From the IMG/VR virus record IMGVR_UViG_3300009514_000001, positions 62,001 to 126,000 of that record: a DNA stretch of 64,000 nucleotides. One strand, written 5' to 3'. The notes below the pieces were generated by a model. That model was not told the origin of the DNA. It saw only the letters and a list, made by a program, of their open reading frames with translations, and ran no database searches. Made by a program: the position numbers and the translations under genes. Numbering within the stretch: the stretch's first letter is position 1; every line of letters begins with the position of its first letter. Of the stretch, positions 4,051 to 63,230 are shown piece by piece.

Positions 4051-4773
4051 TCAGTCGCTGAAAGCCTGAGACACCGACTTGAGGATATAGCGGCGGTTCT
4101 TCTCTGTCAGGTGAGGACTGACTCGGAGCCACGCCTGGCTCGTCCTCATGAACAGCTTGAACCCCTTGGTCGGACCGAGCAACCGCAGGAACTTGTCCCA
4201 CTTGTCGCGGTGCCTCTCCAGCTCGTGGATGATTTCCTGGAGGTACGCCCGCACCTCGGTCGGCTGGTTGTAATAGTCCTCCAGGCTCGTCTCGGCCTCA
4301 GAGGGAACGTCGGAGCCTCCACTGGCATAGCCCTCCGCCGGGTCCGCGATGTGGGTCAGCTCGTGCATCAAGACCTTCTCGACCTCTTTCTTGACGAAGT
4401 CGCCAGTGGAGCGGGCGAACCCGCTCCACTGCGAGGGCGACCACGACCCATTCAGAATGACGACCACTACCGGCTGTCCCGTCCTCTTCACGGTGCCGGC
4501 TCCGCCCGACAACACCGGCTCTTTGGACCGAGGTGCGGGAGAGGTCTCCAGACGCACCAGGATGTCGAGAGTGCGACCGTCCGCCGTGTCGATGGTGAAC
4601 GGCATGCCTCGATGCAAGACCTTACGCCCCCAGGGCCTGTCGGAAGCGGGGAGGCGGACCAGGAACTTGTTGATGTCGTCAGACAGGACAGAGATACGCC
4701 TCTTTGGGATTCGGATGGCTCGGGCGCACACCGAGTAAGCAATGGCCACCCGTCTGGCGATGTGGTGTCTCAT
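4051..4773 (-). CDS. Putative zincin-like metallopeptidase
   Basis: LMHELTH (HExxH) and YYNQPTEVRAY; the ATG at 4773 overlaps the upstream TGA (ATGA). Confidence 0.75.
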   Translation of the reverse strand: MRHHIARRVAIAYSVCARAIRIPKRRISVLSDDINKFLVRLPASDRPWGRKVLHRGMPFTIDTADGRTLDILVRLETSPAPRSKEPVLSGGAGTVKRTGQPVVVVILNGSWSPSQWSGFARSTGDFVKKEVEKVLMHELTHIADPAEGYASGGSDVPSEAETSLEDYYNQPTEVRAYLQEIIHELERHRDKWDKFLRLLGPTKGFKLFMRTSQAWLRVSPHLTEKNRRYILKSVSQAFSD

Positions 4774-7019
4774 AGTCCGTAGTCGTCCATCTTGCGATGG
4801 AGGAGGTCGATCTGTCGGTCGGTAGGCCAGTCGCGGCCACCTTCCGTGAGCTGTTTGCCCACACTGGCGACGAACTCCATCGTCCACTGGGCGTCCTTCT
4901 CTCGGCGGGGGTCCTTGGTCGACTCGGACCGCTTCTTGGCAGCCACCCACAGCTTGCGCATGTCCCCCAGGAGAGCCTTTCGGCGCTCCTCCTGGGCCGA
5001 GTCCTTCGCGGGAGCCTGGGGTTCGGGGGCGGGTGCTGCGGGTGCTGCCGGCCCCGCCTCTACCGCGGTATCAACGGTCGCATACAGCTCTTCGAGTTCG
5101 CGGTCGCCACCGCCACTGTCCCGGAACCTCTTGTGAGCCTCTGTGACGGCGGGGACTCGTTCTACCCAATCCGGAAACTCCCCGTCGCGAAGCCAGGTGT
5201 CCCAGACCCGTTTGAACTCCGCACGCTCTCCTTTCCTCCCCCTCTCCTCTGCCTCCTGCTCTTCATTGCGGCGGGGAACACCCCGAAGGGCATCCTGGAC
5301 ACGCCCCTCCATGTCGGTCTTCTCCCGGAGGGTCAGGACGCCGCCCCTCTGGACCTTGTAGTAGTACCTACGGAGGTCGTCGTCGCCATCCCATCCGGGG
5401 ACCTGGTCGATGGCCGTGAGAATGGTCGAGGTGTACTTCTCTTTGTCGGCCCGGGAAGGTCCGATCTCAGCGAGAGCCTCATAGAAGGGCTGGCTGTCGA
5501 GGTAGGTCGACTTGAATGCCTTGGCTGCCTTGAGGAGGGTCGTCCGCCAGTTCTTCGTGCGCTTGAAGTGACTCTTGCCCTGGGCCTTCTTGTTCAGGGT
5601 CCGCCCCGTCAGAAGACTCACCAGACGCATCTGCATCGAGCCCTTGGCGTAGCCCACGGACTTGCCCGACTGGGCCTGACTGGAGCCCACCTCGATGCAG
5701 ACGCCCTTACTCAGGTGGATGCGGTAGACGCCTCGGGTGCCCGGCTTGACGTCCCACTTCTTGCCGACGGCGCGTGTGGCGTCGGCTACCCAGTCTTCGA
5801 ACTCCTCGCGGCTGATGTCAACGTAGGTCGTTGCCGCGTCTCGCCACTGGGAACCTTCGTCCCAGAGTTGCTCCAGGGTCTTGGCGGACTTTTTAACCGT
5901 TCGCCACCCCTTGAGTAGGGCATTTTGGACTTCCTTGAGATCGAGACCAGGATTCAAGTTGGACTGCCTGACCCAGACACCGCTATAGGCACTTTGGAGC
6001 CATCTCTTGAGGTCCTGCTCTGTCCACCCTTTCCGCTTGGCCTGTCCACCGACGGCGTAGGCCACGTCTTCCGAAGTCCTGGCCGGGTCGGAGGAACGAA
6101 ACATTGAGAAGGCTTGGACCGCCACTTGGGTCAACCACTTCTCGTCCGGAGCACTCTTGGGCAGGCTGCCCTTCTTCCCCAACACAATTTCTTGAAGAAG
6201 ACCAAACCAGGGCGCATACCTGGACTTCAACTCAGATGGATTCAGGAACAGGGCGGCAAAAGCGTCGGCGAAAGCCTCCTCCGCATTGAACTGGCCGTAT
6301 GGAAGGGACGGTGTGTCCCAAACGTCGATGCCATACTCCGGGGCCTTCGCGGTGTATTTGCGATATCCGTACTCGGAGAGAAAGTAATGGCCGATCTCAT
6401 GAGCCATAACCCAGGTCTGCGCCTCAAAGTCGAGGTCCCAGAACTTAGGGTAAATCTTGATGGAGCGTCCTTGTTGACGCGCCTCGGGATGACTTCCACC
6501 ACCGCCACTCACTTCTCGGATGTCCTTGGGAGCAAATTTGCGAAGGCGGCTGTTCCGGCGAAAGAACTCCTTCAGAAAGGAGTCCAGACGATTGCTAGAG
6601 GCTTCGACCTTCCTGTCGACCACAACAGAACCTTCCACAACAACCTCCTCTGAGAAAGGGAGCGAGCCCCTCGACCAGTAATCCCTCGCGAGGGACTCAA
6701 TCGACTCCCAGTCACCTTTTCGAGCACGCTCCACGGCCATCGTATAGTACTCTGGGTTGGCTACATGTGTCTTCCCCCTCACAGACACCTCGAACACACC
6801 CCCCGGAGCAAACAGACTATCATCAGGACGACAAAAACCCTCTGATTTGCGACACACGAACCGAGCGCCGAGACGAGAGGGTTTTGAAGGATATTGCTCT
6901 CGTCGAACAGCCTCGAACACCTCGTCAACTTTGGCTTGAATACCCGTCGGAGACCAACCCGGCACCCGGAACCCTGGTCTTACGGGGTCTGTCTTTGAGG
7001 CTCTCCAGAAATACCTCAT
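4770..7019 (-). CDS. Multidomain protein, 749 aa: N-terminal DUF2441/ADP-ribosyltransferase-like domain, HExxH metallopeptidase and unknown domains
   Basis: EVFEAVRREQYPSKPSRL..F and YW.....SEEVVVEG; MAHEIGH...NAEEAFADAFA. Confidence 0.7.
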   Translation of the reverse strand: MRYFWRASKTDPVRPGFRVPGWSPTGIQAKVDEVFEAVRREQYPSKPSRLGARFVCRKSEGFCRPDDSLFAPGGVFEVSVRGKTHVANPEYYTMAVERARKGDWESIESLARDYWSRGSLPFSEEVVVEGSVVVDRKVEASSNRLDSFLKEFFRRNSRLRKFAPKDIREVSGGGGSHPEARQQGRSIKIYPKFWDLDFEAQTWVMAHEIGHYFLSEYGYRKYTAKAPEYGIDVWDTPSLPYGQFNAEEAFADAFAALFLNPSELKSRYAPWFGLLQEIVLGKKGSLPKSAPDEKWLTQVAVQAFSMFRSSDPARTSEDVAYAVGGQAKRKGWTEQDLKRWLQSAYSGVWVRQSNLNPGLDLKEVQNALLKGWRTVKKSAKTLEQLWDEGSQWRDAATTYVDISREEFEDWVADATRAVGKKWDVKPGTRGVYRIHLSKGVCIEVGSSQAQSGKSVGYAKGSMQMRLVSLLTGRTLNKKAQGKSHFKRTKNWRTTLLKAAKAFKSTYLDSQPFYEALAEIGPSRADKEKYTSTILTAIDQVPGWDGDDDLRRYYYKVQRGGVLTLREKTDMEGRVQDALRGVPRRNEEQEAEERGRKGERAEFKRVWDTWLRDGEFPDWVERVPAVTEAHKRFRDSGGGDRELEELYATVDTAVEAGPAAPAAPAPEPQAPAKDSAQEERRKALLGDMRKLWVAAKKRSESTKDPRREKDAQWTMEFVASVGKQLTEGGRDWPTDRQIDLLHRKMDDYGL

Positions 7020-7126
7020 GACCCACTCCAGGTCGACGTGACAGCCATCTCCTGGCCGTCAAACGTCGTTGTTGTCGGAGGGGCCGCCCCCAGCCTCCAT
7101 GCCTCATTGCAGTGTTCGCAGGTCAC
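7016..7126 (-). CDS. 36-aa CxxC micro-protein
   Basis: GTG at 7126 overlaps the helicase TGA, and its own TGA overlaps the ATG at 7019; reads MTCEHCNEAWRLG... Confidence 0.6.
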   Translation of the reverse strand: MTCEHCNEAWRLGAAPPTTTTFDGQEMAVTSTWSGS

Positions 7127-10100
7127 ATGTCCTCCGGGAGGAACTCGCCCCACTTGGCCCTCAGTTCCTCGGGACCATTTTGGCGTGAGGAGAAGCGACT
7201 CAGGATGTCCTCTGAGGGCCACTCGACGTCTGGTAGGTCTTGGGCCAGGAGCTGGTCCGCCTCGACGTCAGAAAGCCACGAGGACGTCCTCTCGGTGAAG
7301 TCTTCGCTGGGGATGCAACCCTCGGTGACGAACCGACTGGGCTTGCTCCTAATCGTAACCCCCTTCTTGGTGGTACCCAAAACGTCGGGCCGGACAATGG
7401 TCACCGAATCCTCGCCGCGGGTTACGGCCACGTAGGCCAGGCGGCGCTCGGACGCGATGTCTTCCTCAGACTCCGAATTCGGGTGTGGGAAGCCGCCGTG
7501 CCCAGGACCACCCCCCTCCCACATGGGGACGAACAGATGGGGAGCCTCCAGGCCCTTCCATCCGTGGACGGTGTCGAGCTGAACGGCATTGACCGCAGCG
7601 TCGAAATCGGGGTCATTCGGGTTGTCAGACTTCTGGAGCTTGGCGTTGGCTCGCTCCAGTTCCGACATGTAGGACGCGAACTCGTCGATACTGGGGTATG
7701 ACGAAGCGGCTGTCTTCAGGATGGTCAGAGGGCCTAGAGCATAGTCCTCAATGGCCTGCTCCAGGGTGACATCCTCAGTCCCCTTGAGTGCGCTGGCCGA
7801 GACATCCTCCATCGCCTTAGCGTCGTTCTTGACCCGCTCGACGAGGTTGTCGGTGATGCTCTTGTCGTCCTGACCACCCTTGCGGTCAAGGATGTAGTTG
7901 AGCAGCCCCTGGGTGTCGAGAGGAGTGTCTCGATCTTTGCTGCTGAGGAGAGTAATCTCCTGGAGATAGTCGGCGAAGGGCTTGACGTACTCCCGGTTGC
8001 GTCGCCGTGCACGGCCGACGTAGACCTCATCCCAACCGCCACCGAGGAGCCAGGCCAGGAGGTTCTTACCTCTCGCCTTGGAAGCCGCCTTCTTGAAGGT
8101 GTTGATTGAGATGCCCCAGTTCAAAGACCTGAGGGCATCCAGGACCAGGGGGTCGACCCTCTTGGCCGGCTCCGTGAGAGCCGAAGCCCCCATATTGGAG
8201 AGTTGCATCAGACTCAGGACGGACTTGGCCGGGCCCTTGAAGAAGTTGTACTTGGACCGGAACGGGATGCCGAGCTGAATCATGGCAACCCCGTACTCGT
8301 AGGCCTCGCGGTTGGTCCTCACGGCAATGCCGAAGTCCCGGGCCTTGAGAGAAGCATCGTCACCCTGAACCTGGTCGGCGATGGCCTGAGCAACGTAGGG
8401 ACCGAGGGCCTCCCGGGACGGAACCGTGACCTCTCGGATGCTGCCCTCACCCTTGCGTTCGACGTTCGCCTGGCAGACCATCTTGATCTGCTTCTCGTTG
8501 TGGGCAATCATCTGGTTCGCCGCGTCGACGATGGCCGAGCCGGACCGATAGTTCATCCGCAGAATCTTCGTCTCGAACCCTTCGCCGCCGGGAGTCAGGT
8601 CCGACTTCTCGATGAAGAGGTCGGGGTCAGCTCCGCGGAAGCTGTAAATAGAGTTGTGTGAGAGGATGCCGTTGGCGAAGAAGTTGGAGGCGTCTTCAAC
8701 ATCCAGGTCGACGAACTTGGTGTCCTCCGTCCGATTTACGGCGACCACCTTCTCTTGGACGATGGTGTACTGGGCACCTTCCGGAAGGTTGGGTCCGCTG
8801 ATGGCCCTCCCCTTGAACATGGGGACCAACACCGGAACTGTCATACCGGGCTTGACCGCGGACGCCGTCACCAACCTCATCGGTCCCTCAGGGGTGCTCA
8901 AGCGCCGGGACAGCATTGCCCCGGTCCGTTGCACGACGTCCTGGGCAAATGCGAGCGCGTCGCGATAGTTGGCGAACCACCGGCGAAGACGGTTGCGTCC
9001 TTGGGCGGTCCTCACAAACCGCACCCCCTCCAGGCAGTCGTCCAGGTCGTAGCCGGTCCACTCCATCGCTACCTGAGTGTTCGCTCCAGAGTGGGCAATC
9101 ATGTTGAGGGTACGACGCTTTCGTCCGTGTTTTGTGTAGCTCCGTGACATCCAGTTGGGCAGGTCGAAGCTCAGGTTGCGTGCTTCTAGTAGCCTCCCGC
9201 CGTTCCTTCCGAACTCCCGGAACAAGGTCTCGATACGGTCCTGGTTGAGACCCCTATGCACTCCGTTGAACACTGCGGTGGGGATTCCGTAACGGAGACT
9301 GTACTGAGTCTCTTTCAGGAGGGCCTTTTCGCGGTCCTCACAGACATCGATGACCCAGAGCTTCTCGGCCTTCTCCAGAAAAGCTCTCCCACCGAAATGG
9401 TTGAGGTACTGGGTGTCCTTACCTTTGTTGGTGACACCTACCCGGAACCCCATATCCCGGCGCCACATCAGATAGACGATGTGCTGGCCGCCCTCAGTGA
9501 TGATGTCTCCGACCCACAGCTTATGGTTGGGTGACATCAGGAGGTGCTGTCCACCCTCGGTGATGACATCCAACCCCCAGGTCCACGACGATTTCACAGC
9601 ATGACGTACCTTCTGGGGGACGACTTTGCCGTTGCGGTAGGAAAGGACCACGTCCCCCGGCTGAATAGCCGAGGCGTGCTTGCTGTTTCCTCCTGGTGTT
9701 GCAATGACCGAGTTGGCGGCCACGCACTGCTTGTCGTCTCCAATCAACGCCAGGGTGTCGGCTGTCATGTCTCCGTCTTCCCGTGGCTCCTGTGTTTCAG
9801 GGTCGTAATACCCAGCAACCAGGCCGACAAATAGGTGTTGGCTGTTGTGCGAGAGGATGTCTCCTCCGAAGAAATTGGACGCTCTCTCGACCTCAATATC
9901 GAAGAACTCACCTCCATCGACGAGGGCAACCTCCTCAATTATCTCCAGCTCCACAGAGGATTCGCGCAGAGGAGGCAACGGGTCCTCGGCCCTTCTAAGC
10001 TGCTCTTTCCGCATTAGAGTGTGAAATTTTTCTCTCGCCCCCTTACCCATCCCCGAGCAGTCAATGCCGAGACGAGAGGCCAGTCTTCGGTACTCGGACA

Positions 10101-13100
10101 AGGGGAGGAGTTCGGAATACCTAACATCTACCAACCCGCCAGTCTTCACTACCGGAACGGCCATGCCAGGGAACAGAGAGGAGGCTGTGGTAAGGGGGAG
10201 TTTTTCTCCTCCAATCCTTAGGTTGTCCAGAAGAAAGGAACCGTTTGTCTCAGCGACTTTCTCTGCCAGCTTACGAGCTTCGACATAGGAAGGAACCAAC
10301 TTGTTAAAGGTACGACGACCCCCTTTGACCACATAGGTTGCTAGCCCGCAGCTATCTACGTCGTCTCCAGACCATGACATCGAGACCCTAGAACCGACTT
10401 GATACCGGACAGACCGATGAGCATTGAGAGAAACGACCCTTCGAACCTCCTTGCCCCTAGTACTCGTCTGATTGACCCAATGAGGGTAGTCAAAGTAGAG
10501 ATCATGGGCCTCCAGTATCCGTCGTCCGTTATGTCCGAACTCCAAGAACACCCCGTTGATACGCTCCTGGTTACACCCCCGAACAGAGCCCCGAACAGAG
10601 CCCTCGTAGAGGTAGGTCGGAACCTGGTAGCGAAGGGAGTAGAGCTGTTCCTTGAGGAGAATGTCCTCCTCTTCACCCACTTCCAAGAGCCAAGCGCGAT
10701 CTGCCCTTTCTGAACCAGCCCTACTTGAGGAGCCTCCCGCACTTCGAGAAAAAGGACGAGTCGAGGCACCGATACGAAAACCGAGGTCCTCCCGGTACAT
10801 GAGGTAAAGACCCATTTGACCCTCGGGAAGGAGGCCTCGGAAAGGGGTCGCATAGATGCGGTGGTTGGGGGACATCACCAGCTCACGTCCAGAGGAGGTG
10901 GTGATACGATATCCCCTCGACCAGTTGCTCTTTTTCTTGGCCAACACCCTGTTGTAGACCACCTTTCCATTCTCGAACGAGAGGACTGAGCCGCCCACCT
11001 GGACATCACGGATGGCCTTCTCCCCTTCCGGAGTGTAGACGAGGGTCGACCCTAGGACGCAAGCATTCAAATCCTGAGCTTCGTCGACGACGACCATTTT
11101 GAACCGACGTTGGATGCGAGTCCGCACGTTGCGGTTCTCAATCATCATCTTCGAGGCGCCGATGAGCATGTCATCGAAGTCGCCCTGGCCCTCGTACTCG
11201 CTGGCGTTTCCCTTGAGCCACTCGTAGGCCCCGTAGACTGCCGCATAGATGGAGGCGTTAGACTGGCTGAGTGCCCCGTCTCTGGCCCCATCCTGAACAG
11301 CCTTGCCGTGTTCCTCGTGAGCCGCCTTGCCAGGGGCCAGAAGCTGGCCCTTGGTCTTTGAGACGTAGAGGGCGAAACGACCAATGGGGATGGCCGACTT
11401 GGAGTCGCCGGACCCTTCATGGAAGTCATCGTCCCAGGAGGCCCCCAAGTTGAACCACTGGTTCGCCGGCTGCTCTCCCCAGATGGGATTCTTGCTCTTG
11501 ACCCGACCTGACCACGGGGGCTCGTCGGTTTCATCACGGGCGGTCCTTAGGACCGAACTTGTAGTCGCCACAGAAGCGAGCTTGTAGTGGCCCCACCCCC
11601 GACGTTGGAGGGCTCGACGGGTACCTCCGCGCTCATTCTGGTCGGAGGTGACGGCATAGCCCAAGGCACGGTTGATGAAGTCCTTCTGCTTCTGAGTCAT
11701 CTTGGTGGGGTCGACAGGACTCGACTTCCACTTCTGAATGATGGATTGGGACTGGCGGTTCCACCTACTTGGACCGTACTTGCCTTCGTTCCATTTCAGG
11801 AAGTCCATGACGGCAAGAAACACTGAAGAAAGCTCGTCGATTCGCTCTTGGGACTCGTCGACATCGCCCTGCACCTTGGGGAAGAAGGTGGCTTCCGCGT
11901 CGGGCTGGGGCCAGGAGTCCTGCGAGGGCATCATGAGAACCTGGAGGATGGACAGACGAACCAGCTCGGCCTGGTCATATCCTGAGATGATCTTGCCACC
12001 TCTCCTCTTGCCGTAGGTCATACCCATCTTCAGAGCGACGCTGTGGGTCGTCCCGAAGCCTGACTTGCCCTGGCGGTCGGCGTCGATATCGCCGCCGTAG
12101 TTCTTGACGCGCTCAATAAGCTCGGCGCTCGACTTCTTCGTGAAGGAGCAGGCCAGAATCTGGTTGGCCGTCAGACCCACCTCGTTCATATGGTAGACGA
12201 TCTTGCCCGCCAGAACTCTCGTGTTGTGAGAGACAACACCGTTCGCAAGGAAGCTGTGCGTTGTCGGGACCGTGAAGTCATAGACCCGGTGGGTACCCTC
12301 CACACGACGCACCGACACCACCTCGTCAAGGCACATGTCGGAGAGCTTATGGAGAATAGCCGCCTCTGGTCCTTCTGCACCTTTCACGAGACGTTTGAGT
12401 TGCGCCCTTGACGGAGTTCGGTTGCCGAGCAAGTAGTGCTTGACCTGGACCCATCGGTCATCCATCAACAGCGACTGAGACTTCCCGTGCCATCTACCGG
12501 CTTGCTTCCACCACTCTCGGACACCTTTGAGAAGGTCTCCTACATGGGGTACTCCGATGTTGGGGTTGCAGTCCTTTGCGCACAGACTATTCAGGTCATC
12601 GGCCTTCTTGAAGTCGTATCGGAACCCAACGACCTCCCGGAACCCCCGGAGCTGGTCACCGCTGATGAGGATGCGCCAGTACGTGTGGTCGTACCCCTCA
12701 ACATGCTTGGGCTTGAGCATTCCTACAACGCCGAGGCCCAGGAGCATCTGGTGTACCTGACGGGCAAGCGTCTCTGAGGCTGACAACCACTCGAAAGAAC
12801 GGTCTCCAGTAGCCGTGCCGTCTGTATCAAACAGACCCTGCAAAAACCTGATCCTCTCCGCGTCGGAAGAGGACAGGAGCCACGCTGGGACTATCTTGTC
12901 TCGCGCGGAGGAGAAGAACATTCCCTGCTGACGGAGACGCTCCTGAAGTGAGGCACTCCAAAACGTGTGAGTAACGCTCTTCATGTCCTCTTTGGTTGTC
13001 TCTTTGGTTGTCTCTTTGGGTTGCTCGCCCCAGAATTTCTGGGCTAGGCGATAGAAGTGAGAAGGAAGGAAGTCGCCCCCACGAGACCAACAAACTCTGG

Positions 13101-14358
13101 TCTTCTTCGAATCACACCAACCATCACCCATGAACATGCCCAGGAGGTATGCCTCTTCCGGGTCGACGTTCTCCTTTCCCGTGTCAAGAGCATACCCAGG
13201 CTTGAGGACTACGAACTGCCCCTCTTTCATGACATCGAGACGCGTCCACACGGATTGCCCGTCCCAAGTCAGGAGAGGGTGCTCTGGAGTCCCTCGTAGG
13301 CGGATGCCTGAACGAGTTTGGACTTCGATGACCTTGCTCTCCCCCATGTCGAGCCAGGTGGCCTTCTCCAGAGTTGTGTCCAGGGTTTCCGGATTGACCG
13401 ACTTGACCCAGTCCTTTCCACTACACTGATCTAGGCGGAAGGTACCACCCTCAAGTGCCACAAGGGCATCTCCCGTCAGGCATTTGCCCGATCCCGCCCC
13501 GGCTGCAATGACAGCCCGGCCCCGAACCAGCATCGCATCCTCCTGCTCCGGAGAGAGGTTGATGTGTTTGCCAGTCTGTGTCCTGAATTCCTGGGCGGGG
13601 GGGATGGACTTCGAGGCCGCCACAGCCGCTACTGAGGTAGGAGCTTGGCTCGTCTCGACGACCTCTTCGATGCGAGCGTTCAGGGCCGCTTTTCGCTCCT
13701 TGAGAGCTACGGAGCGAGCTTCTGTGGGGTCTGTGGAGGAGATGGCCTGCTTGACGTCTGCGACCTTCTCAGCCAGTATCGCAACCGTCTCGGCGTCCGA
13801 CTGGGCCTCTTCGGTCTCGCTCAGTCCGGCGCCGAGGTTCTGTGCCGCGACCTTGACCCAGTTGCGTGGCTTGACGATGCCACTGACGGCCGGGATGGCT
13901 GCCAAGGCCCTCAGGACGGCCGCCGGGTCTTCCAGCTTCGAGGCATGGAGAACGCCCTTGACGGCGGCTCGGGAGCGACCCGTGAACACACTGCGTAGGA
14001 CGTCTGCCTTGTTGACCAAACGACTGAGAGCTGTGGTCAGGAAGTCTACCTGAGCGAAGACGACGACGTCGGCGCGACCTTTGGCCCGCTTCGCCTTGTT
14101 CATCTTGCCCTTGACGCCACCAATGCGTCCCTCCTCGACCAAGGGATACATGTGCTTCTTTAGGTTGGCCTCCATCTCCTTGCGATAGAGACGGGCGATC
14201 TCAAAGCCCCGCTTGAGATGGTCGTCGCGACCGCGGGCTTCCATACCTCGGGCGTAAGCCCCGAACCCAACCCAGAAGACACTGAGGTCCACCAGGCGGT
14301 CTGGTGTAGTCACATGGTCGCTGCCTTTCTTCTTCGCCGCTGCTTCGCGAGTAGTCAT
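7123..14358 (-). CDS. uvrD: UvrD/PcrA-family SF1 helicase with three inteins and a long N-terminal extension
   Basis: After removing the inteins: AGAGSGK|T, FTKKSS, VDEAQD, GDDKQ|SIYSFRGA, NYRS, TVHGWKGLE, ERRLAYVAVTR. Confidence 0.95.
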   Translation of the reverse strand: MTTREAAAKKKGSDHVTTPDRLVDLSVFWVGFGAYARGMEARGRDDHLKRGFEIARLYRKEMEANLKKHMYPLVEEGRIGGVKGKMNKAKRAKGRADVVVFAQVDFLTTALSRLVNKADVLRSVFTGRSRAAVKGVLHASKLEDPAAVLRALAAIPAVSGIVKPRNWVKVAAQNLGAGLSETEEAQSDAETVAILAEKVADVKQAISSTDPTEARSVALKERKAALNARIEEVVETSQAPTSVAAVAASKSIPPAQEFRTQTGKHINLSPEQEDAMLVRGRAVIAAGAGSGKCLTGDALVALEGGTFRLDQCSGKDWVKSVNPETLDTTLEKATWLDMGESKVIEVQTRSGIRLRGTPEHPLLTWDGQSVWTRLDVMKEGQFVVLKPGYALDTGKENVDPEEAYLLGMFMGDGWCDSKKTRVCWSRGGDFLPSHFYRLAQKFWGEQPKETTKETTKEDMKSVTHTFWSASLQERLRQQGMFFSSARDKIVPAWLLSSSDAERIRFLQGLFDTDGTATGDRSFEWLSASETLARQVHQMLLGLGVVGMLKPKHVEGYDHTYWRILISGDQLRGFREVVGFRYDFKKADDLNSLCAKDCNPNIGVPHVGDLLKGVREWWKQAGRWHGKSQSLLMDDRWVQVKHYLLGNRTPSRAQLKRLVKGAEGPEAAILHKLSDMCLDEVVSVRRVEGTHRVYDFTVPTTHSFLANGVVSHNTRVLAGKIVYHMNEVGLTANQILACSFTKKSSAELIERVKNYGGDIDADRQGKSGFGTTHSVALKMGMTYGKRRGGKIISGYDQAELVRLSILQVLMMPSQDSWPQPDAEATFFPKVQGDVDESQERIDELSSVFLAVMDFLKWNEGKYGPSRWNRQSQSIIQKWKSSPVDPTKMTQKQKDFINRALGYAVTSDQNERGGTRRALQRRGWGHYKLASVATTSSVLRTARDETDEPPWSGRVKSKNPIWGEQPANQWFNLGASWDDDFHEGSGDSKSAIPIGRFALYVSKTKGQLLAPGKAAHEEHGKAVQDGARDGALSQSNASIYAAVYGAYEWLKGNASEYEGQGDFDDMLIGASKMMIENRNVRTRIQRRFKMVVVDEAQDLNACVLGSTLVYTPEGEKAIRDVQVGGSVLSFENGKVVYNRVLAKKKSNWSRGYRITTSSGRELVMSPNHRIYATPFRGLLPEGQMGLYLMYREDLGFRIGASTRPFSRSAGGSSSRAGSERADRAWLLEVGEEEDILLKEQLYSLRYQVPTYLYEGSVRGSVRGCNQERINGVFLEFGHNGRRILEAHDLYFDYPHWVNQTSTRGKEVRRVVSLNAHRSVRYQVGSRVSMSWSGDDVDSCGLATYVVKGGRRTFNKLVPSYVEARKLAEKVAETNGSFLLDNLRIGGEKLPLTTASSLFPGMAVPVVKTGGLVDVRYSELLPLSEYRRLASRLGIDCSGMGKGAREKFHTLMRKEQLRRAEDPLPPLRESSVELEIIEEVALVDGGEFFDIEVERASNFFGGDILSHNSQHLFVGLVAGYYDPETQEPREDGDMTADTLALIGDDKQCVAANSVIATPGGNSKHASAIQPGDVVLSYRNGKVVPQKVRHAVKSSWTWGLDVITEGGQHLLMSPNHKLWVGDIITEGGQHIVYLMWRRDMGFRVGVTNKGKDTQYLNHFGGRAFLEKAEKLWVIDVCEDREKALLKETQYSLRYGIPTAVFNGVHRGLNQDRIETLFREFGRNGGRLLEARNLSFDLPNWMSRSYTKHGRKRRTLNMIAHSGANTQVAMEWTGYDLDDCLEGVRFVRTAQGRNRLRRWFANYRDALAFAQDVVQRTGAMLSRRLSTPEGPMRLVTASAVKPGMTVPVLVPMFKGRAISGPNLPEGAQYTIVQEKVVAVNRTEDTKFVDLDVEDASNFFANGILSHNSIYSFRGADPDLFIEKSDLTPGGEGFETKILRMNYRSGSAIVDAANQMIAHNEKQIKMVCQANVERKGEGSIREVTVPSREALGPYVAQAIADQVQGDDASLKARDFGIAVRTNREAYEYGVAMIQLGIPFRSKYNFFKGPAKSVLSLMQLSNMGASALTEPAKRVDPLVLDALRSLNWGISINTFKKAASKARGKNLLAWLLGGGWDEVYVGRARRRNREYVKPFADYLQEITLLSSKDRDTPLDTQGLLNYILDRKGGQDDKSITDNLVERVKNDAKAMEDVSASALKGTEDVTLEQAIEDYALGPLTILKTAASSYPSIDEFASYMSELERANAKLQKSDNPNDPDFDAAVNAVQLDTVHGWKGLEAPHLFVPMWEGGGPGHGGFPHPNSESEEDIASERRLAYVAVTRGEDSVTIVRPDVLGTTKKGVTIRSKPSRFVTEGCIPSEDFTERTSSWLSDVEADQLLAQDLPDVEWPSEDILSRFSSRQNGPEELRAKWGEFLPEDM
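8653..9726 (-). mobile_element. Intein UvrD-3, 358 aa, sister of UvrD-2
   Basis: Starts CVAAN after GDDKQ and ends SHN|S; internal IVYLMWRRDMGFRVG. Confidence 0.92.
9844..11061 (-). mobile_element. Intein UvrD-2, 406 aa, non-LAGLIDADG (GIY-YIG-like) insert
   Basis: Starts CVLGS after DEAQDLNA and ends SHN|S; internal GLYLMYREDLGFRIG. Confidence 0.92.
12223..13482 (-). mobile_element. Intein UvrD-1, 420 aa, LAGLIDADG type
   Basis: Starts CLTGD after the Walker A lysine and ends SHN|T; LLGMFMGDG and FLQGLFDTDG motifs. Confidence 0.95.
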
Positions 14359-21678: not shown

Positions 21679-21927
21679 CGTCTTCTCTCGTCTTGTCTAT
21701 CTTCTCATCGAGAACGCGCAGGTGTCTCTCTTGCCTGGCAAGGGACTTCTCCTGGGCCCTGAGGGCACCATTGTGCACCTTACCGAGGGTGGCGCGGATT
21801 CGTTCCACGCGCCTCTCGACGAGACGAGCCCCTCCCTGCACTCAGCGAGGTCACCTGGACACTCGGACGAAGGTCCAATACCCAGAGCGGCCTCCAAGAC
21901 AGCTAGGCGTCTTTGGGTGTCATCCAT
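21650..21927 (-). pseudogene. Small coiled-coil gene frameshifted by a 5-bp duplication
   Basis: ACGAG is doubled at 21819-21828; removing one copy fuses the two overlapping ORFs into a 90-aa ORF, MDDTQRRL...CREGLVERRVERIR... Confidence 0.6.
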
Positions 21928-24900
21928 CCATCAACTCGACGAAACGACCGCGGTCGACCAGGACCGGCTCGGGGAACCATCCGTCAAGGGGTACCCCATC
22001 GGGGGCGAACAGCTCCAACCGGAACCCTTCGGGGTCGTGGGACCCTACGATGGCCTGGGCGATTCTCTCCCCCTCCTCCTCGTCTACCTTCGAGAGTCGG
22101 TACGGGATGACTCGGCTTTCCAGAGAATCCTCCGCGGGTCCCTTTGGGACTCCCTGGGAACCCGAATGGAACATGTCCCAGGCCCTCGCCAGAGCCGCTT
22201 TCTCCTCCTCTGTCAGAGGGTTCTCGCGGTCGTGTCTGCCGCTCTCGAAGTAAGGTTCGAGGGTCGGTGGCCACCTGATGTCCTCGAAGGACCCAAACTT
22301 CCCTTTGACGTCCTCAGAGTTTCCGTAGAACCCACGGACACGACGTAGGAGGGCCCAAATCTGGTCGTCGTCGAGCCCTGGCTGCTGAAGCTCTCTGCGC
22401 AGGCCGACAGCATACCGGAAGGCCGTCATGTTGTGTTTGACCGTCCAGTTCGGACCAAGCTCGACGTCCACAGTAAGGGGGACCGCCCAATTTCTGCCTA
22501 GGATGATCGGGTTGGATACCATCAACCCGGAGAACAAGTCGCAGGCTTCCTCAAGGATGTCATTGCGGATCTCAAACACCAGCTCATCGTGCATGGTGAT
22601 GATCATCCGAACCTTGTCCTGCCACTTTCTCCTGCGGACCTCCTTGTAAATGAGACCCATCGCCAGTTTGGTGATGTCAGCGCTCGACCCCTGAATCGGG
22701 CTGTTCACTGCGTTGCGTTCCGCCTTGGCCCGGATGAACCTCTCTTCGTGCTTGATATCGGGGAGCGGGAACTTGCGCTGGAACGCCGTGATGACGTAGC
22801 CGTGGTCCTTGGCGAACTTACGGGTTCTCTTCCACCACTCTTGGAGGGAGGTATATGCCTTCTTGAACTGGTTGGCGATGCGGTAGGCCTCGTTCTCACC
22901 ACACCCGGTGTTGCGGTGGATGGCCTTCGGCCCACCCCCATACGAGAGGGCGAAGTTGGCGCTGTTGTGGACCACCAGGCCATTGGTCCAGTAGACGTTG
23001 GGTTCCGCAACATGAAGGTCGACGACGTTCGACGTGCCAGCAGGCAGGATGACCCTGACCTTATTTGCCCCTGTCGCGGACTTGTATTCCTTGGCCTCGC
23101 GGAGACGACTCCGCTTCATCGGGTGGCGAAGATAGGCGTAGAGCCCCCAGGCCTGTGAGGCCCGAATGTGTGTCCGCACATACCACCTCTGATAGGTCTT
23201 GTTGAACGTCGGTTCCACACACGGAGTCATACCAAGGGCGTGACACACTGCGACCAACTGACCCGAGAACACGAAGTCCTTGGAGGTCCATGACATGCGG
23301 CCGTCCTCTCCGACCGTCCCATCCGTGTCGACCAGACCGCCGAGGAAAGACCACAAGGCTGTGGGTCCGCGACCCAGAACCCAGTCCGGAATCCGAAGGC
23401 ATCTCTTACCCTCGACTCCTTCGACGAGCCCAAGAGCAGACAGGAAGCGCATCGTGTGACGACTGCCCAAGTAGACCAGCTGGTCCTTTCGAGTCGGCAG
23501 GAATCCCACCTTCTCGCAGGACTCGACGATAATGTCCTGCCAGGTCTTGTAGGGCAGTCCGAGCTGGTCGACCTTGTCGACGTGGCCATGAGTGATTGAC
23601 ACGGAAGTCGACCCCTGCTTCGCCCCGTCGCCAGAGAACATGCCGGCGAAATAGGCCATGTCGGGGGACAATGACACCCCCATCTCAGGCAGGTTCTTGT
23701 AGGGTCGATACCCGACTCTACGCCAGGGTTTCGTCTCCACATAGGGAGTTCCAACGGGTTCTGCGAGGACATCGCCTGTGTCGAGGCCCTGTTCGATAGA
23801 CTTGAACGTCCCATCGGCCAGGAGAAAACGATGCTGAGCGGTACAGGTCAAGAGGCCTCGACGGGAGACCACATGGTAGACCTCTTGCTCCCCTCCCTGG
23901 TAGGTCTCCAAAAGACGCAGCTCATCCTCTTCGCCGTCCTGGCCGGTAAACACCGTCCCAGGATACTTGAGGAACGTGTCGGGCTCCTCCGCGAACTTCA
24001 AGGAGCCGATGCGCCGGAGAGCCCCGCTCATACCGAGGATGCTGTCAGGGTGGACGCACTTGCCCTGTTTCCTCTTTTCTTTCCAGTCCTTACGCCTCTG
24101 AGCGGACTCCCCGAAAATCTGAATGGCGGTCAGAGTGTGGATGTCCCCGATCTTGTCCTCGCCGCATTGGGGGCAGAAGAGGGGAGGGGCTGGGGGTGTG
24201 GTCTTGCCGTCTCCCCGGTCGAACTCCAGGTCACATGCACTGCACCGGAAAAACGCGTCAATCCACTTCTTCTCGCCGGAGAGATTGGCGGCCAAACGCA
24301 ACTCGACGCCACCGAAATCGATAGCGACCATGGTCCACCCAGTGGGAGCCACGATACACTCACGAATCCTCAGCAGTGCCGGAGGCCTATTGGTGTCGTA
24401 GGTCGCAGGCATTGACTGGAGGTTGAACCGGGTCCCCCCTGTCTTCGCCGGCTCCCTCTCTCCCTTCGAGCTGAAACGTCCTGTCGCTGTAGCGAACTGG
24501 CGGAACCCGATCTTGAGAGTGTTGTCGTGGCGGTAGGTGTCCTCGAAGATGGCGTAGAGCTTACCGAGGGCGTTCTGGTTGCCGCGCATCCACTTGATGC
24601 GATTGACGAATGGGTAGTCGTGGATTGAGTTCTCGATGACCTCTTCCAGGACTTCCTTGCCGGTAGCCACCTGGCCACTGGGGGTCTTCTTCAGACCTGG
24701 AACAGCCAGGTCCCACATGAGCGTCCCGAGCTGGGCCGGCGCAAGGACGTCGTAGCTGTCCTTCAGTTCGACGCCCTTGCGCGGGGGTGGTGCTTCCCGA
24801 GCAATCAGCTCGCCGAACTTCGGTGCGTCCAGGACGATGCGGAGACCTCCCTTTCCTGAGTGGTTGGCGACGGACACTTGGCCCGTCTGACACATCTTCA

Positions 24901-26017
24901 GGACGCCGAGGTCCTGTCGCTGGAACCGCTTTTGGAACTTCTTGGCCTCCCCCCGAAACCGGTCGACCATAGCCTGGAAGGTCTCTCCAGTGTCGTCCGT
25001 GACTGCCATCTCTGGGTTGGTCACCTCGATGTACAGGGACATGAGGTAGAACGACAGAGGCGTGATGTCGCGCTCCAGGATGTCGGAGGCCCCTCGATAC
25101 ACCTCCTTAACGGCCTTGTAGAGGTCCCCCTGGCCGAGCTGAATCAACTCAGCCACCTTGGCCAGGTCGATGTGGAGGCGATTGCGCTCCATCCAGCGGA
25201 CACTAGGGAGGCAGAGCTTCTCGACCTTGTGGATGAACCCCTGGCTATGGGGTCGATTTGTGCTCTCGTTCTTGCTTGTCAGAGCAAGGGCCTTCTTCTT
25301 GAGCTTCTCATAGAGCTGGAGAGTGCAGATGGCGTCGGCCGCAGCGTACTCCAAGATGCCTGGGTCGGTGGGGTCCAACTCAGCGAAGTTCAGGTCCTTC
25401 GTCTTGGGCGGGAACAGCTCCTTCAGCTCGATTTGCTTCTTCCCCAGGAGGGCGTCTGACATCACCTTGAGGGTCTTCGCTCGACGGGTGCTGTCATCGA
25501 GGTAGGCCAGGATGAGGACGTCTTCCCAGGAGTCTGGGTTGTCCCACGTGCCGTACGGGAGACCCCCGTTGTAGGTCATCAACTCGCCCTCGAACTTGCA
25601 GTTGAAGACGAGGGGGACTGACCTGTCCTTGCCCTTGCGCTTCATGCCCTCCATCAGTCGACGGACCTCGGCATCGAACTCGTGGAAAGGGACGTTGTGC
25701 TCTGACGGCTCGTCGTTGGGGCAGTGACGGACTGGGATGTAGTAGCCGGTCTTGGTGTTCGGGGACAGACAAAGACCGACGATGTCGCAGTTGGTCTTGT
25801 ACTGCGTCCCTTCTGGAGTCTCCCGAGGGAACACGCGGGTGTCGAGGCCTGTGGTCTCCAGGTCGAGGGCGTAGTAGGGCTTCGACAGACACTCGTCGAT
25901 GACCTCGCGCAGCCTGGCGCCGGTCGTAACCAGCTCCATGCGGACCTTCTTCATCCACGGATGGAGGGCGACCTCAATCTTGGGCTTGTCCAGGAACCCG
26001 GCATCAAACAACGACAT
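21920..26017 (-). CDS. polA: Family A DNA polymerase with 3'-5' exonuclease domain and one intein
   Basis: DLETTG, YAAAD, TATGRFSS, motif A DFGGVELR, motif B K|SANFALSYG, motif C MHDEL. ATG 26017 follows AAGGGG (the ORF track starts at GTG 26023). Confidence 0.95.
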   Translation of the reverse strand: MSLFDAGFLDKPKIEVALHPWMKKVRMELVTTGARLREVIDECLSKPYYALDLETTGLDTRVFPRETPEGTQYKTNCDIVGLCLSPNTKTGYYIPVRHCPNDEPSEHNVPFHEFDAEVRRLMEGMKRKGKDRSVPLVFNCKFEGELMTYNGGLPYGTWDNPDSWEDVLILAYLDDSTRRAKTLKVMSDALLGKKQIELKELFPPKTKDLNFAELDPTDPGILEYAAADAICTLQLYEKLKKKALALTSKNESTNRPHSQGFIHKVEKLCLPSVRWMERNRLHIDLAKVAELIQLGQGDLYKAVKEVYRGASDILERDITPLSFYLMSLYIEVTNPEMAVTDDTGETFQAMVDRFRGEAKKFQKRFQRQDLGVLKMCQTGQVSVANHSGKGGLRIVLDAPKFGELIAREAPPPRKGVELKDSYDVLAPAQLGTLMWDLAVPGLKKTPSGQVATGKEVLEEVIENSIHDYPFVNRIKWMRGNQNALGKLYAIFEDTYRHDNTLKIGFRQFATATGRFSSKGEREPAKTGGTRFNLQSMPATYDTNRPPALLRIRECIVAPTGWTMVAIDFGGVELRLAANLSGEKKWIDAFFRCSACDLEFDRGDGKTTPPAPPLFCPQCGEDKIGDIHTLTAIQIFGESAQRRKDWKEKRKQGKCVHPDSILGMSGALRRIGSLKFAEEPDTFLKYPGTVFTGQDGEEDELRLLETYQGGEQEVYHVVSRRGLLTCTAQHRFLLADGTFKSIEQGLDTGDVLAEPVGTPYVETKPWRRVGYRPYKNLPEMGVSLSPDMAYFAGMFSGDGAKQGSTSVSITHGHVDKVDQLGLPYKTWQDIIVESCEKVGFLPTRKDQLVYLGSRHTMRFLSALGLVEGVEGKRCLRIPDWVLGRGPTALWSFLGGLVDTDGTVGEDGRMSWTSKDFVFSGQLVAVCHALGMTPCVEPTFNKTYQRWYVRTHIRASQAWGLYAYLRHPMKRSRLREAKEYKSATGANKVRVILPAGTSNVVDLHVAEPNVYWTNGLVVHNSANFALSYGGGPKAIHRNTGCGENEAYRIANQFKKAYTSLQEWWKRTRKFAKDHGYVITAFQRKFPLPDIKHEERFIRAKAERNAVNSPIQGSSADITKLAMGLIYKEVRRRKWQDKVRMIITMHDELVFEIRNDILEEACDLFSGLMVSNPIILGRNWAVPLTVDVELGPNWTVKHNMTAFRYAVGLRRELQQPGLDDDQIWALLRRVRGFYGNSEDVKGKFGSFEDIRWPPTLEPYFESGRHDRENPLTEEEKAALARAWDMFHSGSQGVPKGPAEDSLESRVIPYRLSKVDEEEGERIAQAIVGSHDPEGFRLELFAPDGVPLDGWFPEPVLVDRGRFVELMDG
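22964..24058 (-). mobile_element. Intein in polymerase motif B, 365 aa, LAGLIDADG type
   Basis: CVHPD...VVHN|S; FAGMFSGDG and FLGGLVDTDG. Confidence 0.95.
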
Positions 26018-26026
26018 ACACACCCC

Positions 26027-27054: not shown

Positions 27055-27679
27055 GGAATAGCTCGTTGTAGCGTTTCAGGAGACGCCCCTTGGCCTCCTT
27101 CCAGGGAAGCGGGACAATGTAGTCCGAGAACCACCCTGTGTGAATGTTGGTGGCGAACAAGCGCCCGTTGACGGGCCGAGGAAGAGGTTGTCCCCCCACT
27201 TCCTCGGGGAGGTCCCACGACTTCACCGGGTCCCTATCCCCGAAGAAGCTGTGAATCTCCAGAACCAAAGCCGCCAGGTCTGCCCACCGTACACTGGGAG
27301 GCATCTCCGGGACATCCGGGTCGAAGGGAATGCCCAGGGCGCTCCATATGGTCTGGGTGGTCTCCCACTCCACGTCGTCGAACCAAGTGATTCCGTCCTG
27401 TCTCATCCTGTGCTTGATGGGCTCTCCGAGGTCCCCCAGGTAGGCCTCGGCGAAGTCATGGGTGAGTCCTTTCCTGGCGTCCTCGGGGGCGCATAGCTGA
27501 CTCACCATGATACTGTGCTGGGCCACGGAGAAAGGCTCCGGGGTATGGCCGTTGTAGCGAGGCTGGGCGGACAGCGAGTGCACGATATCGAGGATGTGAA
27601 CGTCCTCTCGGGCGAGACGGTGGGGGTAGAGGAATCGGCGCTGGTAAGCGGTCTTGAGGCGTGGTTCTTTCTTTCTCAT
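27047..27679 (-). CDS. HD-domain nucleotidase, YfbR/YfdR-like
   Basis: RYNGH...FSVAQHS...LTHDFAEAYLGD; TGATG coupling to the DnaB gene. Confidence 0.85.
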   Translation of the reverse strand: MRKKEPRLKTAYQRRFLYPHRLAREDVHILDIVHSLSAQPRYNGHTPEPFSVAQHSIMVSQLCAPEDARKGLTHDFAEAYLGDLGEPIKHRMRQDGITWFDDVEWETTQTIWSALGIPFDPDVPEMPPSVRWADLAALVLEIHSFFGDRDPVKSWDLPEEVGGQPLPRPVNGRLFATNIHTGWFSDYIVPLPWKEAKGRLLKRYNELFHE

Positions 27680-30567: not shown

Positions 30568-31506
30568 TTAGCTTCCTTGCTTCTTGCTCTTCTTCTTGGC
30601 CTTCTTTTTCTTCCACTCCTTCTCTGGGTCCCGATGAACCCGAAGTGAAGACTTCCGACTCTCTTTCACGAGGCCAGTCTTCGAGGGCAACTCCTGGTCG
30701 AACCCGACGGTCCCTGAGGTGACCGGAGACGGCATGTCGGGGTAGTCGGTCTCGCGGTCGTCACCCAGATCGATTCCGACGTACTCCCACATCTCGATGT
30801 GGTCCATCAGGTGGTCGGAGTAGCACAGATGGCCGGGAGCTAGGGGGGTGTGGGGCTGGTCGAAGAGCCAGGTGGGCTTGCCCTCGTGGAACCGGCTGCT
30901 CAGAGCCTCCCCCAACACCCCGGGCATCTCCTTGTTGTTCGCCGCCTTCATCCCCAGATGGATGATGAGCAGCTCTGGAGGAATCACCAGGTCCTGGAGG
31001 GTGTAGAAGGACATGGAGACCGGAGCGGCGTCCGAATCAAAAATCTCGCCACCCCCCAGAGGAACGGTCGCCAACCAGGCGGTTATCAGGTCAGTGTCGC
31101 TAGCGACCTTGAAAAACCACCGGCTCCCTTTGCGAATGGCGACATGACGGAGGTGCTCTCGGAACACCCTCGTCGGCGCCGTCACCCACACGTTCTTGTC
31201 GGTCAGGTCCCGCAAAGGCGAGGACTCGATGTTGGCGGCCCGACTCAGACCACGCCACCCGGCCTCGACGTTGTCGAGGATGTCCCGTGCGGCCATGCAC
31301 TCACAGCGCATCCGTCCTGGGGGAATGGTGGAGTCGTCTTGAACGAACCCGTGACCGAAACATTGGGGGCAGTTGGGGTCCCCGGGACCCGTGTCGTCGA
31401 CCTTCTCCCGATAGTCAGGGTGGTTGAGTCCTGACGTCTCTGCATCGAAAGCCACTCGACGTCTTTTGTAGTTGGAGCCGTAGCCGTCGTGGTCGTCGTC
31501 CTTCAC
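30568..31506 (-). CDS. DnaC/IstB-like helicase-loader homologue with degenerate ATPase motifs
   Basis: N-terminal CPQC...CEC; ELLIIHLG, SRFHEGKPTWL; lies directly upstream of dnaB. Confidence 0.65.
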   Translation of the reverse strand: MKDDDHDGYGSNYKRRRVAFDAETSGLNHPDYREKVDDTGPGDPNCPQCFGHGFVQDDSTIPPGRMRCECMAARDILDNVEAGWRGLSRAANIESSPLRDLTDKNVWVTAPTRVFREHLRHVAIRKGSRWFFKVASDTDLITAWLATVPLGGGEIFDSDAAPVSMSFYTLQDLVIPPELLIIHLGMKAANNKEMPGVLGEALSSRFHEGKPTWLFDQPHTPLAPGHLCYSDHLMDHIEMWEYVGIDLGDDRETDYPDMPSPVTSGTVGFDQELPSKTGLVKESRKSSLRVHRDPEKEWKKKKAKKKSKKQGS

Positions 31507-34500: not shown

Positions 34501-34544
34501 TTGTACCTCTTCTCGGTCGTCGGGTTCATCTTGTACTTGCTCAT
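31503..34544 (-). CDS. SNF2-family helicase with intein
   Basis: DDTGLGK|T, YDEAT, LTATLIKNN, AGSDAINLQAA, WS...Y.Q..GR..RIG. Confidence 0.93.
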   Translation of the reverse strand: MSKYKMNPTTEKRYKRLSAIRKKKGLAIKRKPPNLRETFVGFDGVERPLKIRDYQVIGILHMASMGRFILGDDTGLGKCTRGDTLIRTGSNGLVPIEDINPGITKPDTFAPVDHWSVQVGGKELQVSQFYHGGVKPTRKVQTHHGFEIEGSLVHPVRVRRGGGEVWVKLAEVREGDYLCIDRSPYKFGRVPVSLPSEVARNGEKTYPTQFKMVPELARFLGYLIAEGWFNHKDGEGWFNHKDGRFFTISQCSLSNPETSADIEYLIDTLFKYPVRKHGNDYPIASTYLIRWLEAIGVPKGVAKDKCIPWSVLRADRECVRQFVRALVDAESHVTKNGIEFSSASEKLAKQLQIVLLGFGVVSRRSPKAVKGRDHTYWRLTILGEDARVFMEHVGLISQRKRDAILPLTQHKENTNHDVVPHLKPEVEALREEIYARCGRQGYKGGGTSKRFGNAFYTTLGHVRAGRRNVSYSFLDTMLGVALEVGVPQDSPSLLELSRVRQREWFYDPVRNIERGEAEVYDITVDDPSHCYVGNGVVNHNTLSTIASLCVLWRTNPDQKALILTTKSAVPQWAGEFQKFTTGVHVTAMTGGNPKKREKQYAEFLAEKGPAVIVMNYALARADFTKIHGELDFRVVVYDEATAFKNPRARIHQVCKALAQKEGVAWVWGLTATLIKNNLIEGYGIYKVVMPPLFGTKTSFMKDYCITRLQKLPKSGRQIPVIIGYRDEDIERFRRVIDPFFLGRPKHEVATELPNVTFRMLKFSMHGDQTRLYSEALSGLLWVQDKETGEMEQKEVDHLTACTRLQQIVNHPELLGRDGKSKKFSLLKDLLSEGDLADEKVIVFTRFAEMVKLIMPALNNTDERRKNRYAVSITGHDSNPKRRAEAQRLFQDPNSDTKVIVITTAGSDAINLQAAKGLICYDTPWSAGDYLQLLGRMVRIGSQHDRVYAIHLCGIGSIDMRVNQVLRKKMDLVEAVLGRRIKGESKPVTISADGDLKAIYEGVLEDARKSRRKK
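32925..34310 (-). mobile_element. Intein after the SNF2 motif I lysine, 462 aa, LAGLIDADG type
   Basis: CTRGD...VNHN|T; FLGYLIAEG and FVRALVDAES. Confidence 0.95.
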
Positions 34545-63153: not shown

Positions 63154-63195
63154 GACACTTGCCTCCCTGAAGTGAGGTTCAACTACGTCATGTTC

Positions 63196-63224
63196 ACTGT
63201 AGTGAGTTGCTGTGAGACCTGCAA
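63196..63224 (-). promoter_or_regulatory. Sigma70-type promoter of the endonuclease gene
   Basis: TTGCAG-N17-TACAGT on the minus strand, 42 nt upstream of the ATG. Confidence 0.55.
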
Positions 63225-63230
63225 GGACCA

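Follow-up and report, generated by a model that had tools for sequence, protein, structure and literature searches.

What kind of enzyme, if any, is carried by two closely spaced inteins in a phage helicase gene, and how did the two come to lie next to each other? These questions are raised by a 64,000-nucleotide stretch of DNA (hereafter the window), bases 62001-126000 of IMG/VR virus record IMGVR_UViG_3300009514_000001, in which a gene for a UvrD-like helicase contains three inteins (Table 1). The record is 222,005 bp long with direct terminal repeats and represents a jumbo phage. An original prediction, made from the letters of the window, had described inteins 2 and 3 as sisters which carry a GIY-YIG-like nuclease instead of a LAGLIDADG endonuclease, and had suggested that the pair reflects the colonisation of a new nearby site. 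The analysis described here indicates that both inteins probably belong to a family specialised in UvrD/PcrA-type helicases, with a nested and divergent GIY-YIG-type domain that has a homing function, and that they represent separate lineages, each tied to its own insertion site.

The boundaries of inteins 2 and 3, read from the translation, are exactly those given in the original prediction, including the spacing of 39 codons, and the three pairs of motifs quoted there are all present and aligned. Each intein starts with a Cys, contains the block B motif S-P-N-H about 64 residues from its start and ends in S-H-N, followed by Ser at position +1. Pfam recognises Intein_splicing and Hint in both inteins; PF14890 (Intein_splicing) scores 35.8 bits on intein 3, at the cut-off, and 28.5 bits on intein 2, below the cut-off. 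The NCBIfam models TIGR01445 (intein_Nterm, 28.5 bits on intein 2) and TIGR01443 (23.3 bits on intein 3) both score over their cut-offs. Excision would give the junctions DEAQDLNA+SQH and GDDKQ+SIYSFRGA, which agree with the uninterrupted consensus of relatives; junctions were read by eye, and the identity of the extein was judged from the unspliced open reading frame (ORF) together with the junction motifs. An end-to-end alignment of inteins 2 and 3 contains 137 identical residues in 414 positions (33%, E 2e-67), which is far past chance. Judged by sequence, inteins 2 and 3 are class-1 inteins and homologous members of one family, and both are expected to be self-splicing.

In each intein, a central domain (207 aa in intein 2, 203 aa in intein 3 and about 205 aa in the family) lies between the N- and C-terminal Hint halves. 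The central domains of inteins 2 and 3 have no match in Pfam, PHROGs, NCBIfam or the sequences of the PDB. No match to an HNH family was found for the two inteins in Pfam, PHROGs and NCBIfam, and Pfam detected no LAGLIDADG family in them, whereas intein 1 matches LAGLIDADG_3 at 6e-16. Comparison of a structural model of the central domain with the LAGLIDADG meganucleases in Foldseek gave probabilities of <=0.10 and root-mean-square deviations of 16-18 A. The Pfam and fold results therefore uphold the claim that the two inteins lack a LAGLIDADG endonuclease. Some actinophage inteins are reported to contain endonucleases encoded out of frame (bioRxiv 10.1101/2025.01.02.630785), a precedent which gives importance to six ORFs of 92-165 aa that overlap inteins 2 and 3 in alternative frames or antisense. 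None of these six ORFs, which are found over both inteins, matches a Pfam family. At a G+C content of 58-60%, ORFs of this length should arise by chance alone, and protein-level conservation of the in-frame domain, the fold of which is confidently predicted, extends over hundreds of clusters. That the true endonuclease is encoded in another frame or antisense within the inteins is, on these grounds, hardly to be expected.

The central domain (insert) of intein 3 was modelled with AlphaFold from a 78-row alignment (model m8d6c08cd9fa5). The model has a predicted local distance difference test (pLDDT) score of 93.9 and a predicted template-modelling score of 0.87, and consists of two subdomains; a model made from only three sequences reached a pLDDT of 44. 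The order of elements in the N-subdomain, taken from the DSSP string of the model, is a strand (residues 8-15), a second strand (19-24), a variable loop, a helix (39-43), a third strand (48-55), a helix (58-72) and two more helices. GIY-YIG domains have the order strand-strand-helix-strand-helix. In the model, the order of elements in the N-subdomain is thus that of GIY-YIG nucleases. Over 127 domains, Y11, L12, M13, G19, R21, G23, R40, E44, W50, E65 and P75 are nearly invariant (Y11 in 125, R21 in 126, R40 in 124 and E65 in 125 of the 127), and Y11, R21, G23, R40, E44, E65 and P75 are invariant over 22 diverse sequences and kept in intein 2. Y11 is located in strand 1, R40 and E44 in the short helix and E65 in the long helix, and strand 2 contains the motif [F/Y]-R21-[V/I]-G23-x-T25, in which G23 is invariant and T/S25 is conserved. 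According to the model, the nearly invariant residues fall at the places of the GIY-YIG active site. The C-subdomain is rich in strands and could, as a guess, have a DNA-binding or scaffold role.

Several methods were used to compare the N-subdomain with known GIY-YIG families. Language-model features of residues 1-120 pointed to T5orf172, MUG113 and SegE_GIY-YIG (score 0.94, 183 shared features), with the ten best named matches all in one clan; the C-subdomain gave no match by the same features. Alignment with hhalign to a PF01541-type profile of 30 sequences from bacterial genomes gave a P value of 1.8e-4 and a probability of 48% over 68 columns, in a register which places Y11 on the Tyr of GIY, R21-x-G23-x-T25 on Y-x-G-x-T and E65 on the invariant Glu. 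The score of 27.1 compares with a mean of 10.9, a standard deviation of 2.2 and a maximum of 19.6 for 150 column-permuted templates, and with 9.4 for the reversed template. Repeating the alignment with another 22 sequences, most of them bacterial, gave P 1.9e-4 in an unchanged register. As a yardstick, the accepted clan members T5orf172 and PF01541 are aligned to each other by the same procedure with P 1.1e-5. Among viral predicted structures, about 10 of the 50 best weak fold matches are named GIY-YIG, intron endonuclease or NUMOD; the support from structural alignment for the N-subdomain consists of one row of the second-look list. A Foldseek search of the PDB and a wide search of VIA both returned mostly generic matches to the C-subdomain.

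Several results speak against the assignment to GIY-YIG. With ten N-subdomains as queries, PF01541, PF10544, PF13455 and PF19835 were unmatched at E<=10, and at this threshold no curated hidden Markov model (HMM) of a nuclease matches the whole central domains of inteins 2 and 3 either. A Foldseek search of the central-domain model against the PDB gave nothing significant. Alignment with hhalign to T5orf172 was not significant, with E values of 0.22 for the phage's own protein and 0.076 for a 12-sequence profile. In addition, the position of the canonical second Tyr is occupied by an Arg (R21), which is preceded by Phe or Tyr, a variable loop replaces the canonical Arg helix after the second strand, and R40, in the short helix before strand 3, is not aligned to the catalytic Arg by hhalign. 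The phage itself encodes a free-standing T5orf172 protein of 176 aa outside the window (PF10544, 35.3 bits); a search of the phage genome with PF01541 found nothing, and a word search for relatives of the T5orf172 protein gave two matches. This protein has no detectable sequence similarity to the intein domain. It has a Lys at the place of the second Tyr, and the Arg-bearing second motif of the intein domain resembles the K-I-G of T5orf172.

We consider it quite likely that the N-subdomain belongs to the GIY-YIG superfamily. The GIY-YIG-like nuclease of the original prediction is in this respect moderately supported by independent methods, and is weakened by the lack of a match to a curated HMM and by the substitution of Arg for the second Tyr. 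As an alternative, the domain could be a homing nuclease with a new fold that has reached the strand and helix order of GIY-YIG by convergence, but sequence profiles, language-model features and structural alignment, which share no machinery, agree on the superfamily and on the residue register, and the permutation control is clean, so that we regard convergence as improbable.

A profile of both central domains was searched against 1.84 billion cluster representatives and identified 943 protein clusters at E<=1e-3, of which 95 were found at E<=1e-30. In the best 150 of the 943 clusters, the domain is nearly always trailed within 56-135 residues by H-N and a Ser, Cys or Thr, and therefore sits inside an intein. 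UvrD-helicase or UvrD_C domains are present in 17 of the 18 top matches scanned, while the remaining one shows inteins only; one of the helicase matches carries the PcrA/UvrD tudor domain of cellular enzymes. The match P0135 (1037 aa) has the N-subdomain in two partial copies, together with two stretches that match Intein_splicing, and lacks a recognisable host domain. A scan of genome contigs with a two-sequence pattern gave no matches. With a pattern derived from a 12-row alignment, the domain was found in metagenome-assembled genomes from at least seven bacterial phyla, which carry the labels Planctomycetales, Phycisphaerae, Nitrospira, Myxococcota, Fimbriimonas, Chthonomonadaceae, Chloroflexota, Anaerolineae, Pyrinomonadaceae, Solirubrobacterales and Patescibacteria. 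It is also present in 40 records of cultured phages, mainly Escherichia phages, and in one of these, Escherichia phage Bas62 JohannJBalmer (MZ501084, CDS bas62_0080), the existing annotation of the feature, an intein with 42-44% identity, is merely 'intein'. Inteins 2 and 3 thus belong to a large, unnamed intein family specialised in UvrD/PcrA-type helicases of phages and bacteria. UvrD was already listed as an intein host, with 16 cases (Novikova et al., 2016, PMC4760082). Libraries of predicted structures agree with UvrD-type hosts and add phage ParB-methyltransferase proteins. The same predicted domain recurs in phage proteins that combine ParB_N with an N6_N4 methyltransferase domain (row 8 of the Atlas and BFVD A0A8S5TZY8; TM 0.53 over 141 residues, Foldseek E 5e-6). 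On the basis of the predicted structures, these proteins may represent a second kind of host for the intein family.

Six matches of 265-366 aa start with Met and lack both Cys1 and the terminal H-N, and in most of them the His of block B is lost. All six retain every conserved residue of the central domain, and NCBIfam found no intein signature in the one that was searched. A word-index protein search with the domain alone, which was limited in length, identified one stand-alone relative. In all four cases with enough flanking DNA, a UvrD-like gene without an intein, encoding 483-499 aa, is followed 11-48 nt downstream by the free-standing gene (Table 1). Free-standing homing endonuclease genes are classically found in just such a position, beside their target. 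In the tree described below, the free-standing proteins are found at two or more distinct positions, adjoining the inteins of site a. Yeast HO endonuclease is an intein-derived protein without splicing residues. The relatives P0002, P0083, P0084 and P0095 resemble HO in being intein-derived without splicing residues and differ from it in that HO is a LAGLIDADG enzyme; like the seg and mob genes of T4-like phages, they adjoin the gene that is invaded by their intein relatives. Motif III reads Q-A-I-Y in all four neighbouring helicases; the residue that is Ser or Cys in intein-bearing alleles is an Ala here. An allele with Ala at +1 could not allow splicing in motif III, and may in addition be a variant resistant to cleavage, which is suggestive only.

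These free-standing copies also bear on the possibility that the conserved domain is no nuclease at all, and binds DNA or protein or regulates the intein, which would persist by vertical inheritance or through an endonuclease of another element. The unmatched nuclease HMMs, the altered second Tyr and Arg helix, and the likeness of the C-subdomain to generic binding folds are what such a domain would lead one to expect. Against this, polar residues of a catalytic type (Tyr, Arg, Arg, Glu and Glu) are invariant in very divergent members, and the occurrence of the family at four sites, with a scattered distribution among phages and numerous bacterial phyla, points to mobility. The splicing-dead copies, moreover, are placed like homing endonuclease genes beside their target. 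We therefore find a domain without nuclease function unlikely.

The second question, how the two inteins came to lie next to each other, was approached through their insertion sites and phylogeny. Intein boundaries mapped in the matches define at least four insertion sites of the family in UvrD-like helicases, designated a to d (Table 1). Sites b and a are both occupied in relatives P0003, P0004 and P0006, as in the phage studied here, and sites c and a in relatives P0005 and P0008. In a maximum-likelihood tree of 127 central domains, made without an outgroup, intein 2 falls in a clade with all site-b and site-c inteins (support of 99 in the Shimodaira-Hasegawa-like approximate likelihood ratio test, SH-aLRT), and intein 3 in a clade of site-a inteins (SH-aLRT 96), the members of which are up to 70% identical to intein 3. 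The central domains of inteins 2 and 3 are only about 39% identical. Constraining the two as sisters cost 108 log-likelihood units, and the approximately unbiased (AU) test, performed on a 47-row subset under LG+G4, rejected the constraint with p-AU 0.0003. Judged from these sequence comparisons, each of the two inteins is closer to inteins at the same site in other genomes than to its neighbour.

The original prediction of sister inteins thus does not hold, although the two are homologous within one family. Their full-length homology and close spacing could be taken to mean that they are recent sister copies and that one intein jumped over 117 nt within this phage. The separate and supported clades, the rejection by the AU test, the closer identity of intein 3 to same-site inteins elsewhere and the occupation of the same pair of sites in other genomes make a recent jump scarcely credible. 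Spread to neighbouring sites took place long ago and is common to many genomes. The colonisation of nearby sites is consequently retained for the family as a whole, with its four helicase sites, and dropped as an event in this phage. A switch from site a to sites b and c is the more likely direction, because site a has a much greater diversity and host range.

Taken together with the separate site lineages, the preferred reading of a UvrD/PcrA-specialised family with a nested GIY-YIG-type homing domain leads to the following scheme. After translation, each intein would splice out and rejoin helicase motifs II and III. The two-part domain of about 205 residues would sit at the usual endonuclease insertion point of Hint, in place of LAGLIDADG or HNH. 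Its first ~115 residues would form a very divergent module of the GIY-YIG superfamily, nearest in flavour to T5orf172, with Tyr11, Arg21 (for the second Tyr), Arg40, Glu44 and Glu65 as the probable active site, and its last ~95 residues an alpha/beta module that possibly aids DNA binding. Homing would take place in mixed infections: the nuclease would cleave a helicase allele that lacks the intein, close to the insertion site, and repair off the intein-bearing copy would then copy the intein in. We infer the splicing, the nuclease activity and the homing of inteins 2 and 3.

In their overall design, inteins 2 and 3 resemble class-1 inteins with a nested endonuclease, such as PI-SceI/VDE and the LAGLIDADG-bearing inteins of DnaB and RecA, which likewise have a Hint splicing domain (Cys1, the His of block B, a terminal His-Asn and a nucleophile at +1) with an extra domain between blocks B and F, and likewise interrupt a motif conserved in a replication or repair ATPase. 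They differ in that the extra domain is neither LAGLIDADG nor HNH, with a predicted GIY-YIG-like core and an additional alpha/beta module. With the GIY-YIG nucleases (I-TevI, the N-terminal domain of UvrC, UPF0213/YhbQ, T5orf172, MUG113 and SegE) the intein domain shares the strand and helix order, a Tyr in the first strand and x-[IV]-G-x-[TS] in the second, an invariant Glu in the helix that follows the third strand, and similarity in profiles and features. Unlike these nucleases, it has an Arg for the second Tyr (a Lys in T5orf172), a loop for the first long helix, and neither NUMOD nor helix-turn-helix DNA-binding modules. Known GIY-YIG homing enzymes are free-standing or intron-encoded, while the domain described here is in frame within an intein. 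Several close insertion sites in one helicase are also seen in haloarchaeal MCM (PMC10643990). In contrast to this case and to the UvrD survey (PMC4760082), a single family with an unusual nested domain is found here at four or more sites, and the nested domain is uncharacterised in both surveys.

GIY-YIG endonucleases were stated as not known inside inteins (Dassa et al., 2009, PMC2677866), and a 2020 review mentions GIY-YIG merely as a general homing endonuclease family (PMC7765530). A general list of types associated with inteins also contains GIY-YIG, once and with no specific in-frame example, and the in-frame endonucleases in the intein reviews and surveys searched are LAGLIDADG and HNH. 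No description of the central domain was found in the literature searched, which left most subscription journals outside its coverage, and an earlier description is possible. Inteins 2 and 3 probably carry a nested endonuclease of an unreported class. The fullest version of this claim, that a large unnamed class with a GIY-YIG core, the first in frame in inteins, has moved among at least four sites of UvrD-like helicases and has more than once become free-standing beside intein-less helicases with Ala at +1, is put forward tentatively, as a possibility a little short of an even chance. If true, it would add a third class of nested endonuclease, with hundreds of clusters that span jumbo phages and bacterial chromosomes, and would widen the view of how inteins gain mobility. 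It would also provide a natural series for site switching (four sites in one helicase core), for interference between neighbouring inteins and for the passage from intein to free-standing homing gene. Because close relatives are present in cultured E. coli phages (BASEL collection), splicing, cleavage and homing can be tested by standard phage genetics. A GIY-YIG-type nuclease within an intein scaffold could be of interest for the engineering of site-specific nucleases.

Table 1. Inteins, their domains and insertion sites, free-standing relatives and other genes mentioned in the text. Positions refer to the window unless a locus or contig is named; a slash in a motif marks the point of insertion.
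Feature	Position	Strand	Description and evidence
Intein 2	9844..11061	-	406 aa, residues 1100-1505; after DEAQDLNA (motif II tail; site b); boundary residues, TIGR01445
Central domain of intein 2	10201..10821	-	207 aa, between Hint halves; GIY-YIG-like N-subdomain roughly 10462-10836
Extein spacer between inteins 2 and 3	9727..9843	-	39 codons (117 nt); its last residues, GDDKQ, are the first half of motif III
Intein 3	8653..9726	-	358 aa, residues 1545-1902; splits motif III GDDKQ/SIYSFRGA (site a); boundary residues, Intein_splicing, TIGR01443
N-subdomain of intein 3 insert	9154..9504	-	model residues 1-117; proposed GIY-YIG-like nuclease module
C-subdomain of intein 3 insert	8866..9153	-	model residues 118-213; strand-rich alpha/beta, no clear relative
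Site a			motif III, GDxxQ/SIY; used most often by the family; holds intein 3
Site b			follows DExQDxNx; holds intein 2
Site c			within motif II (VDE/CQD), upstream of site b by five residues
Site d			after conserved A-N-x-L-I-x-H-N, farther downstream
Free-standing, splicing-dead relatives	L037:4797-5810; L038:4001-5002 (P0084); L040:1943-2929; L042:3340-4392
UvrD-like (SF1) helicase precursor	7123..14358	-	2411 aa, three inteins; single open frame on translation
Intein 1	12223..13482	-	420 aa, residues 293-712; Walker A (GSGK/.../T); ordinary LAGLIDADG domain; Intein_splicing 1.7e-16, LAGLIDADG_3 6.3e-16
Free-standing T5orf172 protein of the phage	G000:C1:177954-178181; locus L006:1462-1992	-	176 aa, outside the window
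ORFs with intein signal, in the window	27679-30552; 31503-34544; 21920-26023	-	Intein_splicing
ORFs with intein signal, outside the window	G000:C1:188866-189765, 203028-203135		Intein_splicing
Very large ORF	43854-55223	-	3789 aa
Very large ORF	37139-42967	-	1942 aa
Very large ORF	55287-58376	-	1029 aa
Very large ORF	58376-62062	-	1228 aa
Very large ORF	4770-7019	-	749 aa
ROS/MucR-type regulator ORF	62062-63249	-	395 aa

The helicase gene lies on the minus strand, which holds nearly all long ORFs of the window. In the precursor, Pfam recognises UvrD-helicase (1.8e-24), UvrD_C (1.2e-18), three Intein_splicing stretches and one LAGLIDADG_3 domain, and a helicase of about 1227 aa is left when all three inteins are excised. 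Intein_splicing matches are present in at least six ORFs of the phage, with about eight inteins in total. Among the further intein-containing ORFs, those for a DnaB-like and for an SNF2 helicase both have LAGLIDADG domains, and a weak intein signal is seen within the family A DNA polymerase of the phage (1367 aa). For four of the very large ORFs of the window (1942, 1029, 1228 and 749 aa) Pfam gave nothing at E<=1e-3. The ORF of 395 aa next to the 1228-aa ORF contains a ROS/MucR-type transcriptional regulator domain (8.5e-6, 26.3 bits).

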